Shown piece by piece: positions 9,421 to 54,885 of a stretch of 64,000 bases of DNA (position 1 is the stretch's first letter; each line of letters opens with the position of its first letter). Where the stretch lies: the sequence record JN849462.1. One strand, written 5' to 3'. The position numbers and the translations under genes are program-made. The notes under the pieces are model-generated. The model saw only the letters and a program-made list of their open reading frames with translations. It was not told the origin of the DNA and did no database searches.

Positions 9421-9444
9421 AAGCGCCTTCGGGCGTCTTTTTTT
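9421..9444 (+). terminator. Intrinsic terminator after nrdD
   Basis: gcgcc-ttcg-ggcgtc followed by T run. Confidence 0.75.
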
Positions 9445-10525: not shown

Positions 10526-10982
10526 CGAATTTGATTTTGCAAACGGCGAAGGTGTTCGATTGAGCATCTTCGTTTCTGGTTGTGAGCATCGCTGTGCGGG
10601 CTGCTACAACGAATCGACGTGGAACTCGAACGATGGTATTGATTTTACCGAAGAAACGCTTAGAGACGTTCTGACGAGCTTAGAAAAGCACGATGGTTTG
10701 AGTCTCACGGGCGGGGATCCGTTATATCCGAGTAATCGCGAAGCGATTTTGCGTATTTGCAAAGCAGTGAAAGAACGCTATCCCGACAAAGACATTTGGA
10801 TGTGGAGCGGGTACAAGTTATCTCATGTTTATCATTTAGAGATAATGAATTACATTGATGTTTTCATTGATGGGCGTTACAAGAGACATCAACCAACGCA
10901 GAAAGCGTGGCGCGGTTCTGACAATCAAATATTGTACGTTCGGGTAAATGATGAATTAGTTATTGACGAAGAGAGAAATTAA
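10506..10982 (+). CDS. nrdG: Anaerobic RNR activase (radical SAM)
   Basis: ANGEGVR, GCEHRCAGCYN, GLSLTGGDPL, WRGSDNQ. Confidence 0.96.
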   Translation: MKYQKINEFDFANGEGVRLSIFVSGCEHRCAGCYNESTWNSNDGIDFTEETLRDVLTSLEKHDGLSLTGGDPLYPSNREAILRICKAVKERYPDKDIWMWSGYKLSHVYHLEIMNYIDVFIDGRYKRHQPTQKAWRGSDNQILYVRVNDELVIDEERN

Positions 10983-11506
10983 TGAGTTGTGTTTGGATTA
11001 CAAGTGACTTGCATTTAGGTCACAGAAATATTGGTAAGTTTCGCGACGGGATTGAAGACACTCAAGCGAACACCGACTGGATTGTTGACTTCTGGCTGAA
11101 GAACGTTCGCAAGCGTGACACTGTGATCATGCTTGGCGATACTGCATTCACTGAAGAAGCTATTGGCATTCTTGCGGGTCTACCGGGTCGTAAAGTACAA
11201 TATGGCGGAAATCACGACGACCTGCCTGTTTCAAGCTACATGCGTGCATTTGACGTAATCCGTGGTTGTGAGAAGTTCAAGAAGCTTGGGTGGTTGAGTC
11301 ATTTCCCTCTGCACCCTGCTGAATTACGTGGTCATTTCAGCATTCATGGTCACGTGCATTACGAAACAATTGACGACTATCGTTATGTTAACGTTTGCTG
11401 TGACAATTTGCAACGTCACATTGGTCAACCGATGATCCGTCTTACCGATTTGCGGCAACTTCTTGACAAACGACGCGAGTCTAAAGAGGTCAGTTACGAC
11501 TTCTAG
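10982..11506 (+). CDS. Calcineurin-like metallophosphoesterase
   Basis: SDLHLGH, LGD, GNHD, HGHVH. Confidence 0.88.
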   Translation: MSCVWITSDLHLGHRNIGKFRDGIEDTQANTDWIVDFWLKNVRKRDTVIMLGDTAFTEEAIGILAGLPGRKVQYGGNHDDLPVSSYMRAFDVIRGCEKFKKLGWLSHFPLHPAELRGHFSIHGHVHYETIDDYRYVNVCCDNLQRHIGQPMIRLTDLRQLLDKRRESKEVSYDF

Positions 11507-11529
11507 AACGTAGTCTATCTGCATGAACA

Positions 11530-11537
11530 TCTAAATA
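11530..11537 (+). promoter_or_regulatory. Late promoter TCTAAATA inside a long inverted repeat (11514-11578) that includes the downstream ATG
   Basis: tctatc-tgcatgaaca ... tgttcatgca-ctat-gataga. Confidence 0.6.
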
Positions 11538-11570
11538 CTGGTATGGTATTAAAGATGGTGTTCATGCACT

Positions 11571-12416
11571 ATGATAGATGTTTTGTTAAGATATGACGCA
11601 AGGATCATCAATAGCAGAAAGATAGTCATCTATACAGATGAAAATCGTCTCAGTCTTATTGTGAAACTCGCGAAAGAGCTTAACGGGACGTACAAGAAGT
11701 GCGATCCCGGTAGTTCAATTGGTTGTATACAGATGGAAAAATGCAGAGTATACGTCAAACCAACATCTAATCCTGGCATCGAGAATGAACGCAATTTCTA
11801 TACTATTGTAAAGCAACACATTGATTCTGGCTGTACGCGGATTAAAATTGGTGGGCGTCTTATAAAAGGTGTTCAGTCAATCGAAATGACTGGTCACGAC
11901 ACGAAAAACAATAAGAAAGCCGATATGGTCTTGAAAACAGACAAAGGCGACTTTCCGATTTCAATCAAAAAATCAAATGCAGAACGTTGGGCGAGTACTG
12001 ACGTTATTCACGGCACAGAAGCATGTAAGCTGTTAAATCGCATGGTAGACAAGAAAATCGTCACACTAACCGATTTCTCAGATGACGGAAAAGTAAAACG
12101 ACTGAGCCAGCCCATTGCTAGACGACTTAGAGACGATGAGATCAATCACGTTGTATTCGGGTCTGATATTCTCGGGAAGGGTCTTGTTGTCGTCAATAGC
12201 TTTACTCTAGATGATTTTGTATTCAAGCGCGGTACTTTACATATTAGCGGTGAAGTGCTTTTAGATTCGAGTGATGTAAAAGACACAATTTACCACCCAT
12301 ATATGATGATTAGAAATGATGCATGTCGCCGCTCGAAGGCATTGCCTTATGGTGTACGTGTTGAAGTTGTATTCGAGTCAAGAATTACTAAAAATACGAT
12401 TGTTTACGAGGAGTAG
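11571..12416 (+). CDS. Putative PD-(D/E)XK (restriction-endonuclease-like) nuclease
   Basis: GIENE..., KKADMVL..DFPISIKK catalytic-like motif. Confidence 0.55.
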   Translation: MIDVLLRYDARIINSRKIVIYTDENRLSLIVKLAKELNGTYKKCDPGSSIGCIQMEKCRVYVKPTSNPGIENERNFYTIVKQHIDSGCTRIKIGGRLIKGVQSIEMTGHDTKNNKKADMVLKTDKGDFPISIKKSNAERWASTDVIHGTEACKLLNRMVDKKIVTLTDFSDDGKVKRLSQPIARRLRDDEINHVVFGSDILGKGLVVVNSFTLDDFVFKRGTLHISGEVLLDSSDVKDTIYHPYMMIRNDACRRSKALPYGVRVEVVFESRITKNTIVYEE

Positions 12417-12419
12417 CTA

Positions 12420-13244
12420 ATGGCTATCAAAGATAAATTGGAAGAACTTATTGCGTCGGTTCACCAATGTACTACAAAAGACGGCGTAGTTGAAATTGAA
12501 AAACTATATACGCAAAAGAAAAAAGAACTCGGTGCCAACATCACCCCGATGATGGATATTCGCGTTCGTGACGCAATTCGTGGTAAAATCACGATGTTCG
12601 ATAAAGAAAATGCTGCTGCTAAAGAAGAAGCTAGACGGAAAAAACAACAAGAAGAAGCTGAAGCAATTGCGGCTAAACTCGATGAGGGTATTTTTGTTGT
12701 TTCAGAGAAAGAGTTCTTTGATCACGAAACCGTTGTGAATGAGTGTGCGATTGATGCTGCGTGTATTATGGACGTAGACTCAAGCATACCTTCTGTTGGT
12801 CATAAAGAACTGACTAAAACGCTTTCCGAGGCATGTGAGCATGTTGGTGCAGTAGGTAAAATATTTGTACCTGAGTCACAGAACAAAGTATTGTCGCTGC
12901 AAGAGCGCGTTGAACTATTTGAATCATTCTCAGACGTTGATGTTGCACCCAAAGGTGTGATGTTTGCTGAGGTTGAGAACATGATTCAGAAAGGCATTAC
13001 TCGTGTATTTGCATTCGTAGAAGCGAATAAAGTCGCGGAGTACCGTCGTCTCGGTCGCCATTTCTTGCGTGTTGGTGGCACTCGCTTTGAGATTGTTGAA
13101 GTCAAGAACAAAGTACCATCTAGCACGATTGAAAATCTGATTCGTGAGGATAATCTCATTGAGTTTATGCGTAGTGTACCGATGCCATTAAACGAAGCCG
13201 AGAAGATCTTTGATCGTCAGCTTGAACAACTACTGGGGGCGTAA
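12420..13244 (+). CDS. UvsW.1-like domain fused to a degenerate HIGH-type nucleotidyltransferase-like domain
   Basis: CTTKDGVVEIEKLY..DIRVRDAIRGK vs T4 UvsW.1 CQTLEGLEELEAYY..DISVRDALAGK (recalled); PSVGH, LSLQERVEL, SSTIENLI. Confidence 0.5.
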   Translation: MAIKDKLEELIASVHQCTTKDGVVEIEKLYTQKKKELGANITPMMDIRVRDAIRGKITMFDKENAAAKEEARRKKQQEEAEAIAAKLDEGIFVVSEKEFFDHETVVNECAIDAACIMDVDSSIPSVGHKELTKTLSEACEHVGAVGKIFVPESQNKVLSLQERVELFESFSDVDVAPKGVMFAEVENMIQKGITRVFAFVEANKVAEYRRLGRHFLRVGGTRFEIVEVKNKVPSSTIENLIREDNLIEFMRSVPMPLNEAEKIFDRQLEQLLGA

Positions 13245-13720
13245 TGAGTGTAGCTAAACGTGGCGCAGATGGGTTTTATGCTCTTCGCTTATCTCGTTTG
13301 CTTCATCTTCGTTTTGATCGTTGGGAAGCATATCGAATGGGGATCATCGACGCAGATGGTAAAAAACTGCGTGACCCTGTAACTGCTCAAGAAAAGAGTA
13401 ACTGGACGTTATTTCACGTAACTGTGCGCAATATCAAGCGAATGGTTGGCGCATTGCCGGGTGGTAAGACAGCACTTGATTACGGCGCGTCATATCTGTT
13501 GCTAATTGAACTTGCAAAAGAGTACGGTTTATCTGACCAATTTGCAGATGAGTGTATTCGAGTAGAAGAATCCGTTGTTGCGGGTGATTCGGGTGGTGAT
13601 GTAGGCGCTATTGCTTCTGGTGAAACTACTGGTGCAGTTACAAGCGCAGGGCCCGAGACTCTTGGTGACAAGAAGAAAAAGAAAAAGAAGAAGCTGAAAA
13701 AGTTCAGACACTTCGACTAA
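13244..13720 (+). CDS. 61.1: T4 gp61.1-like conserved protein
   Basis: EAYRMGIIDADGKKL, TLFHVTVRNIKRM; upstream of primase. Confidence 0.75.
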   Translation: MSVAKRGADGFYALRLSRLLHLRFDRWEAYRMGIIDADGKKLRDPVTAQEKSNWTLFHVTVRNIKRMVGALPGGKTALDYGASYLLLIELAKEYGLSDQFADECIRVEESVVAGDSGGDVGAIASGETTGAVTSAGPETLGDKKKKKKKKLKKFRHFD

Positions 13721-13727
13721 TTAAAAT

Positions 13728-13749
13728 GCCTCGTTTTCGGGGCTTTTTT
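13728..13749 (+). terminator. Intrinsic terminator
   Basis: gcctcg-tttt-cggggc-tttttt. Confidence 0.7.
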
Positions 13750-13800
13750 ATGTTTATCGTATCGTGATGCCATGTAATAATAAGACACGGAGGTTATATT

Positions 13801-14859: not shown

Positions 14860-15356
14860 TGAAGATTATTTACCTGCCGCACTACAAAGAAAACAAAGAA
14901 CTTGGTCTGGACGCAATTGAGCCAATCGGTGTTAAAGACCCAGATGACGCGGGTATTGATCTGCGTGCTGCAATTGAAGAATCAATCGAGTTACAACCGG
15001 GTGATTCAGTCGTTATCCCGTCTGGTGTCAAGATTCACATTGGGTCGCACCCGCTTCACCAACAATACACTGATTTGGGTGTATACGGTGCAATTGCACC
15101 GCGCAGTGGTCTTGGGTTCAAGCACTTCTTGCGTCTAGCAAACACAATCGGGATTATCGACGCTAATTATCAAGGCGAAATCATGATCAAAATTCGCAAC
15201 GAAGGCGACGACGTACTGCATATTGAGCGCGGTGATCGTATCTGTCAATTGATTTTCCACACTTACGTGAAGAACGTTCAGTTTGAAGAAGTTGATACTT
15301 TTGACGAAGAAACTGACCGTGGTGCTCGTGGGTTTGGTGGTAGCGGGGTGAAATAA
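14859..15356 (+). CDS. dut: Trimeric dUTPase
   Basis: AGIDL, PRSGLG, GIIDANYQGEI, GDRICQL, RGARGFGGSG; start taken at the TAATG overlap (ORF track gives 14844). Confidence 0.95.
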   Translation: MKIIYLPHYKENKELGLDAIEPIGVKDPDDAGIDLRAAIEESIELQPGDSVVIPSGVKIHIGSHPLHQQYTDLGVYGAIAPRSGLGFKHFLRLANTIGIIDANYQGEIMIKIRNEGDDVLHIERGDRICQLIFHTYVKNVQFEEVDTFDEETDRGARGFGGSGVK

Positions 15357-28265: not shown

Positions 28266-28273
28266 ATTAAATA
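28266..28273 (+). promoter_or_regulatory. Late-promoter-like ATTAAATA
   Basis: gtATTAAATA, as at 26405. Confidence 0.5.
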
Positions 28274-28307
28274 CGTGCGTCTAATAATAACTTAAAAGGT
28301 AATACAA

Positions 28308-28553
28308 ATGACGCACGATTTGAATATGCTTCTTGAGCAGTACAACCTCGCGAATTACGATTGCGACGGTGATTTTGAAGACTATTACTGGTCGGTGGCA
28401 GAATGGATTGGTCAGACTGTCTTTAGTCACGGTACAATTCGTAAACACGATATTCTTGAACTGCTTTGCGATTTACTTGAAATATCTGAAGACCAAATCA
28501 ACGTAGATGACGTTGACGATTTTCTAACCGAAGTTTATGAGGTGATTGAATAA
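28308..28553 (+). CDS. Highly acidic small protein (possible DNA mimic / internal protein)
   Basis: 21 D/E vs 2 K/R in 81 aa by hand count; MTHDLNMLLE. Confidence 0.65.
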   Translation: MTHDLNMLLEQYNLANYDCDGDFEDYYWSVAEWIGQTVFSHGTIRKHDILELLCDLLEISEDQINVDDVDDFLTEVYEVIE

Positions 28554-54465: not shown

Positions 54466-54496
54466 TAAATACTCCCGTATGAATAATATGGGAGTA
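54464..54496 (+). promoter_or_regulatory. Late promoter GATAAATA overlapping an RBS-sequestering hairpin
   Basis: tactcccgtat-gaata-atatgggagta. Confidence 0.7.
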
Positions 54497-54501
54497 ATAT
54501 C

Positions 54502-54885
54502 ATGTTCGCACAATACAAAATCTATGTGCTATTGGCTATTGCTGCTGTGTTCATTGGGTCTATTGGTTATCTGAAGTATGAGAATGTTAGTCTTGAGAAA
54601 GAACTAGTCACTCAAATTGCTGAAGTCGAACGACTGACTGGTGATAATGAACGCTTGCACGCGACTGTTGAAAGCAAAGACCGCACAATCGAGAACTGGC
54701 GTTCAGTTTACAACGAGCAAGAGCAGTATCGAAGCAAACTTCAGAAAGATCTAGACGAACTAACCGCAACTATAGACACGTATAAGTCACGTCAAGACAT
54801 CGTGTTTAAAAAGCCAGGTCTAGTTCAGATTAAAGAGCAGAAAGCTCTTGATAAGTTCTTTGATGAGGTGCGCAATGGTCAATAA
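54502..54885 (+). CDS. Inner-membrane spanin (Rz / PseT.3-like)
   Basis: N-terminal TM plus coiled coil, KPGLV; between rnlA and pseT. Confidence 0.8.
   Translation: MFAQYKIYVLLAIAAVFIGSIGYLKYENVSLEKELVTQIAEVERLTGDNERLHATVESKDRTIENWRSVYNEQEQYRSKLQKDLDELTATIDTYKSRQDIVFKKPGLVQIKEQKALDKFFDEVRNGQ

Follow-up and report, generated by a model that had tools for sequence, protein, structure and literature searches.

The stretch of DNA analysed here is the first 64 kb of the genome of Vibrio phage phi-pp2 (JN849462.1, 100% identity), a giant T4-like phage of the KVP40-like Schizotequatroviruses, and it is referred to throughout as the window. At 11571-12416 it contains an open reading frame (ORF), the ortholog of KVP40.0017 and annotated in KVP40 as a hypothetical protein, which is preceded by a predicted RNA hairpin that takes the start codon into its 3' arm and has a late-promoter box inside it. 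The favoured interpretation, held with reasonable rather than full confidence, is that the gene encodes a late-gated, metal-dependent PD-(D/E)XK endonuclease of the monomeric HinP1I/MspI/HhaI-CviJI structural type. Since the start codon is locked in a hairpin that also contains the late promoter, synthesis of the nuclease is probably confined to the late phase of infection. The regulatory side of this interpretation is well supported by a comparison of the leaders of related genes, and the nuclease assignment is supported by the predicted fold and by the motif. From these we infer the site of the late start, the timing of expression, the nuclease activity and a need for the protein to stay off until late.

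The gating device itself is of a kind known from T4. The novelty lies in the cargo, an unnamed, large family with a restriction-enzyme fold that appears to be consistently under late control in T4-like marine phages. The device is kept on one gene family despite unrelated leader sequences, which is evolutionary evidence of unusual clarity that it matters when the protein is made. The family is structurally closest to the chlorovirus enzymes that cut or nick at sites of 2-4 bp, and it is core to the broad-host-range Schizotequatroviruses. If active, the protein would be an orphan restriction-like enzyme in a phage without a methyltransferase, and it would then have to be asked how the DNA of the phage itself escapes; the enzyme would also be a possible source of new frequent-cutting or nicking specificities. 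Through relatives with capsid-targeting sequence (CTS) leaders, a nuclease would join the cargo that T4-like phages inject.

Hairpin, late-promoter box and start codon

The gene and its leader contain the following features.

11513-11531, plus strand: left (5') arm of the hairpin, non-coding, which would be missing from late-started RNA (RNAfold).
11530-11537, plus strand: late-promoter box TCTAAATA of the gp55 type, overlapping the top of the left arm (sequence and conservation).
11534-11550, plus strand: inner stem-loop AAUAC.../...GUAUU within the main loop, spanning the predicted late start at about 11543 (fold; all pairs kept, loop variable).
11557-11579, plus strand: right (3') arm with a 4-nucleotide bulge, holding GGUG and the ATG (RNAfold).
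11571-12416, plus strand: coding sequence of the nuclease family, 281 residues, PHROG 12709 (ORF list and KVP40 annotation).

The original prediction described two complementary arms, tctatc/tgcatgaaca (11514-11529) and tgttcatgca followed by ctat and gataga (11559-11578), which bury the start codon and flank a late promoter. Every sequence element of that description lies where it was placed, and the observation as a whole is confirmed. The interpretation given with it is partly supported, in that each part open to an in silico check stood up. When folded with RNAfold, 11513-11531 pairs with 11557-11579 in a helix of 7 + 12 bp, 19 bp in all, around a 4-nucleotide bulge, with a minimum free energy of -27.4 kcal/mol over 96 nucleotides (z = -3.29; one of 200 shuffles was as stable). 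The ATG at 11571-11573 is buried at the junction of the bulge and the lower stem, where its A and U lie in the bulge and its G is paired with C11519. The sole element that resembles a Shine-Dalgarno (SD) sequence, GGUG at 11557-11560, is also paired. An RNA beginning at 11543 does not fold significantly (z = -0.59, centroid -1.3 kcal/mol).

The perfect 10-nucleotide inverted repeat at the heart of the hairpin was recovered independently by an inverted-repeat scan (I22). Repeats of this length are not rare, with 25 comparable pairs in the 64 kb, and the case therefore rests on the full helix, the position of the start codon, the box inside and conservation. An Rfam scan of 11300-11800 returned no family.

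The late-promoter box, TCTAAATA at 11530-11537, has the same form as boxes found upstream of bona fide late genes in KVP40. Across some 95 kb of KVP40, a survey of the sequence ahead of annotated late genes found NNTAAATA 17-45 nucleotides before the ATG of nearly all late genes with an intergenic gap. The exact TCTAAATA octamer is located 17-40 nucleotides upstream of gp48, gp19, 0353, 0372 and 0377, and TATAAATA lies upstream of gp23, gp18, gp22, gp25, wac and uvsW. Position -13 of the box is loose in KVP40 (PMC1524935; PMC2988020), and the related phage Aeh1 has a late box of the CTAAATA type (PMC1524935). The window is 94% coding, yet 12 of its 21 copies of TAAATA fall in the non-coding 6%, an enrichment of about ten-fold, and 11 copies are found in the correct orientation no more than 80 nucleotides upstream of an ORF. 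With the spacing known from T4, in which the late box occupies -13 to -6 (PMC1524935), late transcription would start near 11543, in the loop of the hairpin.

Conservation of this layout was followed at three levels of divergence. The closest level is an alignment of nine KVP40-like phages, whose identity across 600 nucleotides around the site is 75-100%. Both arms, TCTAAATAC and the small inner stem are invariant in eight of them, the exception being phage 1.081.O, and variation is found past the upstream stop codon, in the 6 nucleotides that directly precede the left arm, and in the 3' half of the loop. The TCTAAATA box is unchanged in all nine phages next to a loop that varies. Phage 1.081.O has three changes in the stem, one of which is compensatory (C-G to U-A) and two wobble-compatible (A-U to G-U and G-U to A-U), so that 197 of 197 cells of the stem in the alignment stay paired.

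The second level consists of divergent orthologs from metagenome assemblies (L043-L046) and phage D479, in all of which the next gene encodes a UvsW.1 domain. In L043 (70% protein identity) the bulge is now paired and the AUG lies wholly within the stem. The arms of L044 (56%) are entirely different, with TCTAAATA immediately past the left arm and a right arm that reaches the AUG; a counterpart of the inner stem is found in L043, L044 and L045. L045 (51%) and L046 (48%) have different arms again, with CCTAAATA and TCTAAATA inside. The ortholog of D479 diverges most (about 33% identical to a family relative); there, GATAAATA and one further base are followed by a 10-bp stem that pairs both the SD and the AUG. 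All of these leaders fold significantly, the equivalent helices of six divergent orthologs having z between -2.2 and -5.7. Their common layout is a left arm, a NNTAAATA box and a right arm at or enclosing the AUG, and the promoter-inside-hairpin architecture thus recurs in orthologs with unrelated leader sequences.

At the third level are distant homologs of 28-34% identity, found on IMG/VR contigs of 23-45% G+C and including cyanophage S-8S55. TAAATA lies directly upstream in most of them. The box is in a hairpin loop with the 3' arm abutting the ATG in L013 and L018-L029. In L006, L011 and S-8S55 it lies within or next to a canonical terminator, whose 5' arm a late start would bypass. That unrelated sequences build one layout in front of a single gene family is difficult to account for without selection for late-only expression.

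Terminator-like sites bracket the region at 9423-9436, past nrdD, and at 13728-13743, past the ORF for a 158-residue protein, and a terminator scan found no such site between 9436 and 13728. With none between 9436 and the hairpin, transcripts from upstream should run into it. The phosphoesterase gene immediately before the hairpin is the last of the upstream unit, and RNA reading through from it would include the whole hairpin. In the proposed mechanism, transcripts of the upstream nrdG-phosphoesterase unit would hold both arms, and the hairpin formed on them would enclose the weak GGUG and the AUG so that the nuclease stays untranslated; it may additionally attenuate transcription. During gp55-type late transcription, RNA polymerase would use TCTAAATA inside the hairpin and start near 11543 in the loop. 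The resulting RNA would lack the 5' arm, be open for translation and probably continue through the UvsW.1/nucleotidyltransferase-fold gene and the gene after it, spanning three genes and ending at the 13728 terminator.

Late gating of this T4 type, by a hairpin with an internal late promoter, is known for I-TevI, I-TevII/III, segB and Aeh1 mobE, and also for T4 e and soc (PMC2988022 for I-TevI, segB, mobE, e and soc). As in those systems, the phi-pp2 gene is a putative late gene 3' of earlier transcription, the hairpin on the long transcript would occlude the initiation region and the late RNA would be without the 5' arm (PMC2988022). The CTAAATA-type box is a feature shared with Aeh1 (PMC1524935). 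Unlike those of the known cases, the predicted phi-pp2 hairpin would occlude mainly the AUG and a weak GGUG rather than a strong SD. Moreover, unlike the T4-type homing cases, the phi-pp2 gene encodes neither a GIY-YIG nor an HNH protein and is not sporadic in its clade.

Protein fold and family

The PD-(D/E)XK-like nuclease had been suggested on the basis of two short motifs, which are located as KADMVL at residues 116-121 and ISIKK at residues 130-134 of the 281-residue ORF. The fold is borne out by an AlphaFold2 model and by structural matches from VIA-align and BFVD, and D118 and K133 within the motifs are invariant in the family. The model, made from a 15-sequence alignment, has a mean predicted local distance difference test (pLDDT) score of 88.3 and contains a small alpha/beta domain at the N-terminus (residues 1-66) and a PD-(D/E)XK nuclease domain (residues ~67-270). 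VIA-align of residues 67-270 matched HhaI (Z 6.4, 146 residues, root-mean-square deviation (rmsd) 4.2 A), MspI (Z 6.2, 166 residues) and HinP1I (Z 6.0, 156 residues), with the HinP1I-DNA complex 2FKC at Z 6.5 over 176 of 247 residues. Lower-ranked matches were Hjc resolvases, I-Ssp6803I (Z 5.0) and VRR-NUC.

Against the predicted structures of BFVD, Foldseek gave significant, full-length matches, led by chlorovirus R.CviJI (E 3.6e-8, template modelling (TM) score 0.55, 260 columns). Nt.CviQII followed at E 8.8e-7, together with another chlorovirus endonuclease and uncharacterised cyanophage proteins. A cluster of look-alikes in the ESM Atlas, a language-model lead, has PF11463 (R-HINP1I) in 14% of its members. 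Sequence-based naming produced one match alone, PHROG 12709, which is described as of unknown function.

An alignment of 24 family members that are 28-100% identical has the invariant positions N72-E73, K116-x-D118, S131-x-K133, N136, W140, D144, FG-x-D199 and R248-x-D250-x-x-R253. The codons of the putative catalytic positions are as follows.

11787-11789, plus strand: codon of E73 (N72-E73), at the start of the first core helix (invariant in 24; helix 68-85 in the model).
11922-11924, plus strand: codon of D118 (KAD), at the start of core strand beta-2 (invariant; strand 119-123 in the model).
11961-11969, plus strand: codons of S131-I132-K133, the (D/E)XK position at the end of core strand beta-3 (S131 and K133 invariant; strand 126-133 in the model).

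In HhaI, D34 lies where beta-2 starts and K48 where beta-3 ends, and the motif is SD-X11-EAK (PMC7026639). D118 of the phi-pp2 protein occupies the same position as D34, and the protein shares with HinP1I, MspI and HhaI the order of a helix followed by strands, the Asp that starts beta-2 and the Lys that ends beta-3, its own motif being D-X12-SxK. Unlike these enzymes, it has an extra N-terminal domain and no detectable sequence relationship to them, and its gene is phage-encoded, apparently late, and has no partner methyltransferase that could be found. Residues 1-66 superpose on the palm fragment of Pol-beta-type nucleotidyltransferases (Z 5-6.4) but are without the catalytic Asp pair, and they are treated as a family-specific accessory domain. 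An invariant G-S-S-I-G loop is found in this domain (11571-11768).

A further comparison is with the chlorovirus enzymes R.CviJI (RGCY) and Nt.CviQII (RAG), which are likewise virus-encoded and whose predicted structures align with a TM score of about 0.5 over some 260-300 columns. The chlorovirus enzymes are always encoded beside a cognate methyltransferase (PMC7019647). In contrast, KVP40 is without the three methyltransferase families that were searched for, the sequence identity is just 13% and a protein of the phi-pp2 type was not found in particles.

A profile search of 1.8 billion cluster representatives gathered the wider family. At E <= 1e-3 it comprises 620 clusters at 50% identity, and 307 are found at E <= 1e-30; almost all members are about 300 residues long, and there is no Pfam model for the family. 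Among cultured phages it is present in all KVP40-like vibriophages, the Stenotrophomonas Menderaviruses, Xanthomonas phage BUDD and the Synechococcus phages S-8S55 and Sf-FR1. No mention of the protein accessions was found in the literature.

Contrary evidence and alternative explanations

Several findings weigh against a late-gated endonuclease. On the regulatory side, a search of sequencing runs recovered the locus from three DNA-type data sets and from no RNA run, the SD is weak even on the opened RNA, the U-rich tract 3' of the stem permits a terminator role, and covariation in the close clade is thin, with a single compensatory pair and an observed score that is matched by 75 of 500 shuffles. 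As for the protein, its similarity to solved restriction enzymes is modest on the scale that VIA-align itself provides (Z 6.0-6.5, rmsd 4-5 A), a Foldseek search of the PDB gave nothing significant (best restriction-enzyme match E 0.27), and neither single sequences nor a 24-member profile had a match in Pfam, NCBIfam or the PDB sequences. An invariant Ser stands in place of the middle acid of the motif, which makes the motif a variant, with E73, D118 and K133 at canonical secondary-structure positions. This middle position is occupied by Gln in HinP1I and Asn in MspI. Finally, the KVP40 genome lacks DNA methyltransferases of the three families searched (PF00145, PF01555 and PF02086; the C5, N6/N4 and D12 classes). 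With no cognate methyltransferase found, and with a phosphoesterase gene and a UvsW.1/nucleotidyltransferase-fold gene as neighbours, the phi-pp2 gene is not part of a classical restriction-modification pair.

The hairpin could instead act chiefly as a terminator or attenuator of the upstream early unit, with the nested late promoter restarting transcription and control being transcriptional for all three genes. Although this is judged unlikely, it accounts for a number of observations. GUUUUGUU lies 3' of the stem, the L046 leader ends in GGGUUUU ahead of the AUG, and the equivalents in L006, L011 and S-8S55 are canonical GC stems with a T-run that have the late box in them or just before them. 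The boxes of KVP40 0353 and gp19 are also nested in or abut terminator hairpins, and the two products encoded downstream of the nuclease gene resemble late, particle-associated proteins. The phi-pp2 hairpin, however, has an A-U-rich stem base, a 25-nucleotide loop and a 4-nucleotide bulge, all of which disfavour termination, and it was not called as a terminator by the consensus scan. Moreover, the helices of D479, L043 and L044 are placed to pair the AUG itself. The two roles can in any case coexist.

A second alternative, raised by the original prediction, is that the gene is a selfish, free-standing PD-(D/E)XK homing endonuclease with I-TevI-like regulation that cuts related phages lacking it. 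The family is patchy across the T4 superfamily, occurring in S-8S55, Sf-FR1, Menderavirus and BUDD and being apparently absent from most cultured cyanophages, and the homing endonucleases of T4 use the same regulatory logic. I-Ssp6803I is among the fold matches, and the L013 copy has a homing-endonuclease gene as a neighbour. In a 178-kb IMG/VR contig, a family member (L015:2435-3325) lies between the small and large terminase genes, a gap that is a typical position for inserted free-standing endonucleases. In the Schizotequatroviruses the idea is nevertheless disfavoured, because all of the roughly 50 KVP40-like genomes found have the gene at one and the same locus, and it is core in 18 of 18 genomes with a ratio of nonsynonymous to synonymous substitution rates (dN/dS) of about 3e-5, indicating strong purifying selection. 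Linkage to the UvsW.1-domain gene is constant even at 48% identity, the catalytic-type residues are invariant across 24 lineages, and neither degraded copies nor a natural empty site were found in the KVP40-like clade. A selfish element is therefore decidedly improbable here, and the patchiness at the scale of the superfamily, together with the copy in the terminase gap, keeps mobility elsewhere possible.

A third proposal is that the enzyme is packaged in the head and injected with the DNA to attack host DNA at the next infection, as with chlorovirus restriction enzymes or the internal proteins of T4. The chlorovirus enzymes are generally packaged and are thought to degrade host DNA within minutes (PMC7019647). 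The late promoter and the likeness to the predicted structures of R.CviJI and Nt.CviQII would fit such a role, as would the N-termini of certain relatives. The internal proteins of T4 have a CTS leader of about 10 residues that is cleaved by gp21 after L/I-x-E, and a CTS-like N-terminus was found in 22 of 154 family representatives (about 15%) against 3.9 expected from shuffled N-termini. Many distant members of the family resemble T4 CTS cargo in combining leaders of the MKxxEF(I/V)xE type with late promoters, which hints, at the level of sequence, that these relatives are packaged nucleases. The phi-pp2/KVP40 protein, by contrast, is leaderless and starts with MIDVLL at the conserved core. 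Its ortholog in the sister phage 6E35.1a, VP6E351A_0053, is missing from the 94 proteins of the published particle proteome (PMC12028318, Table S4), even though low-level contaminants were detected there. With no leader and no detection in these particles, the packaged-enzyme idea misfits the phi-pp2 protein, for which it is very unlikely to hold.

The CTS-like extensions themselves are 10-20 residues long, for example M-K-T-N-E-F-V-S-E and M-K-L-Q-E-F-I-V-E, and are carried by P0011-P0016, P0020-P0023, P0033, P0044, P0075, P0128 and others, and at loci L005, L008, L009, L012, L016 and L018.

Least credible of all is a nuclease fold that serves as a DNA-binding or structural factor, or a hairpin that acts in RNA stability or processing instead of gating: the Ser at the acidic position of the motif, the modest Z-scores and an N-terminal domain that resembles a nucleotidyltransferase palm fragment without its catalytic Asp residues would allow it, but E73, D118 and K133 are invariant over lineages of 28-34% identity and the recurring layout is specifically that of a promoter inside a hairpin with the AUG in the 3' arm.

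Site statistics were obtained for 159 kb, made up of the window and about 100 kb of KVP40 (pieces at 74.5-79.5 kb and 150-245 kb; L037/L038). GGCC occurs 16 times against 147-336 expected, a 10-20-fold depletion, and eight 6-bp palindromes are absent, including ACGCGT, CAGCTG, CGATCG, CGCGCG, CTCGAG and CTGCAG, each with 37-73 copies expected. Avoidance of sites is to be expected for a broad-host-range phage that faces host restriction, and the depletion is thus taken as a lead to the specificity of the enzyme and nothing further. GGCC is also depleted in the L004, L005 and L010 loci and in the Stenotrophomonas phage locus. The Schizotequatroviruses have a deazaguanine (dPreQ0) pathway. Our best guess is that the target is DNA unlike the replicating or packaged DNA of the phage, that is, the DNA of the host or a competitor.

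In a broader and rather doubtful proposal, the family would be to phages what the virion restriction endonucleases are to chloroviruses. It would consist of late-made cutters or nickers of short sites that, in many T4-like marine phages, are loaded into the head by CTS leaders and injected against host or rival DNA. The leaderless KVP40 type would then be tolerated through a purged site (GGCC) or deazaguanine modification, and through late-only synthesis.

Neighbouring genes and related hairpins

The nuclease gene is preceded, in this order, by nrdD, two small ORFs, nrdG and the phosphoesterase gene, and it is followed by ORFs at 12420-13244 and 13244-13720 and then by primase gene 61 (13801). 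The neighbouring features are as follows.

10982-11506, plus strand: phosphoesterase gene, KVP40.0016 ortholog (PHROG 547 at 6e-51, ORF list, KVP40 annotation).
12420-13244, plus strand: gene for a UvsW.1 domain and a nucleotidyltransferase fold (NMNAT/cytidylyltransferase-like), second in the putative late unit (Pfam UvsW-1 at 3e-35).
13244-13720, plus strand: third gene of the unit, 158 residues with a C-terminal run of about 10 lysines, PHROG 2086 (ORF list).
13728-13753, plus strand: predicted intrinsic terminator, GC-rich stem and T-run, upstream of primase gene 61 (terminator scan).

The claim that the nuclease gene heads a late unit agrees with the in silico findings: the 13728 terminator closes a set of three genes and both downstream products have counterparts in a particle preparation. 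The 6E35.1a proteome includes an ortholog of the second gene and one of the third, with 7/19 and 11/24 spectral counts (PMC12028318, Tables S4 and S8), that of the third gene being VP6E351A_0055. That preparation was precipitated with polyethylene glycol and also contained dUTPase, SSB and thymidylate synthase (PMC12028318), so that presence in it demonstrates abundance late in infection and is not proof of residence in the virion. The ortholog of the third gene bears an odd eggNOG label, gp23-like, in the published table.

The product of the second gene has its UvsW.1 domain at residues 1-70 and a P-T-x-G-H motif near residue 125. Its AlphaFold2 model (pLDDT 87) matched NMNAT 1f9a at Z 11.8 and T4 UvsW.1 2jpn at Z 8.0, and cytidyltransferase-like proteins of cyanophages match it in BFVD. 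BLASTP did not find homology between this product and cyanophage phrog_455. The gene is mis-annotated as a DNA helicase in many records.

A cytidylyltransferase/NMNAT-like gene lies repeatedly one or two genes 3' of nuclease-family genes, as in L006, L013, L042 (S-8S55) and L041 (Stenotrophomonas phage Ps15). The pairing is found in cyanophage-type contigs and Menderavirus, and as a fusion in KVP40-like phages, which suggests an old conserved neighbourhood.

In T4, gene 49 is located downstream of nrdD/nrdG and is gated likewise. A replacement of T4 gp49 (endonuclease VII) by the phi-pp2 nuclease was rejected, as KVP40 has its own gp49 (PF02945, 64.8 bits; KVP40.0131).

Late boxes nested in hairpins are common in KVP40. 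Just past gene 15 (KVP40 ~215020-215075; L038 ~15020-15075), for instance, a perfect hairpin, GGTCTTC / GAAGACC, holds the TCTAAATA box of KVP40.0353 in its loop. Within the window, two further leaders carry the same device as the nuclease gene, so that gating of this kind would be a general habit of phi-pp2. At 54466-54504, GATAAATA is followed immediately by a stem, CUCCC.../...GGGAG, which pairs the SD of a 127-residue ORF starting at 54502 (z -3.85). At 28268-28330, ATTAAATA is followed by CGUGCGUC, which is paired with GACGCACG overlapping the AUG of an 81-residue ORF at 28308 (z -4.53).

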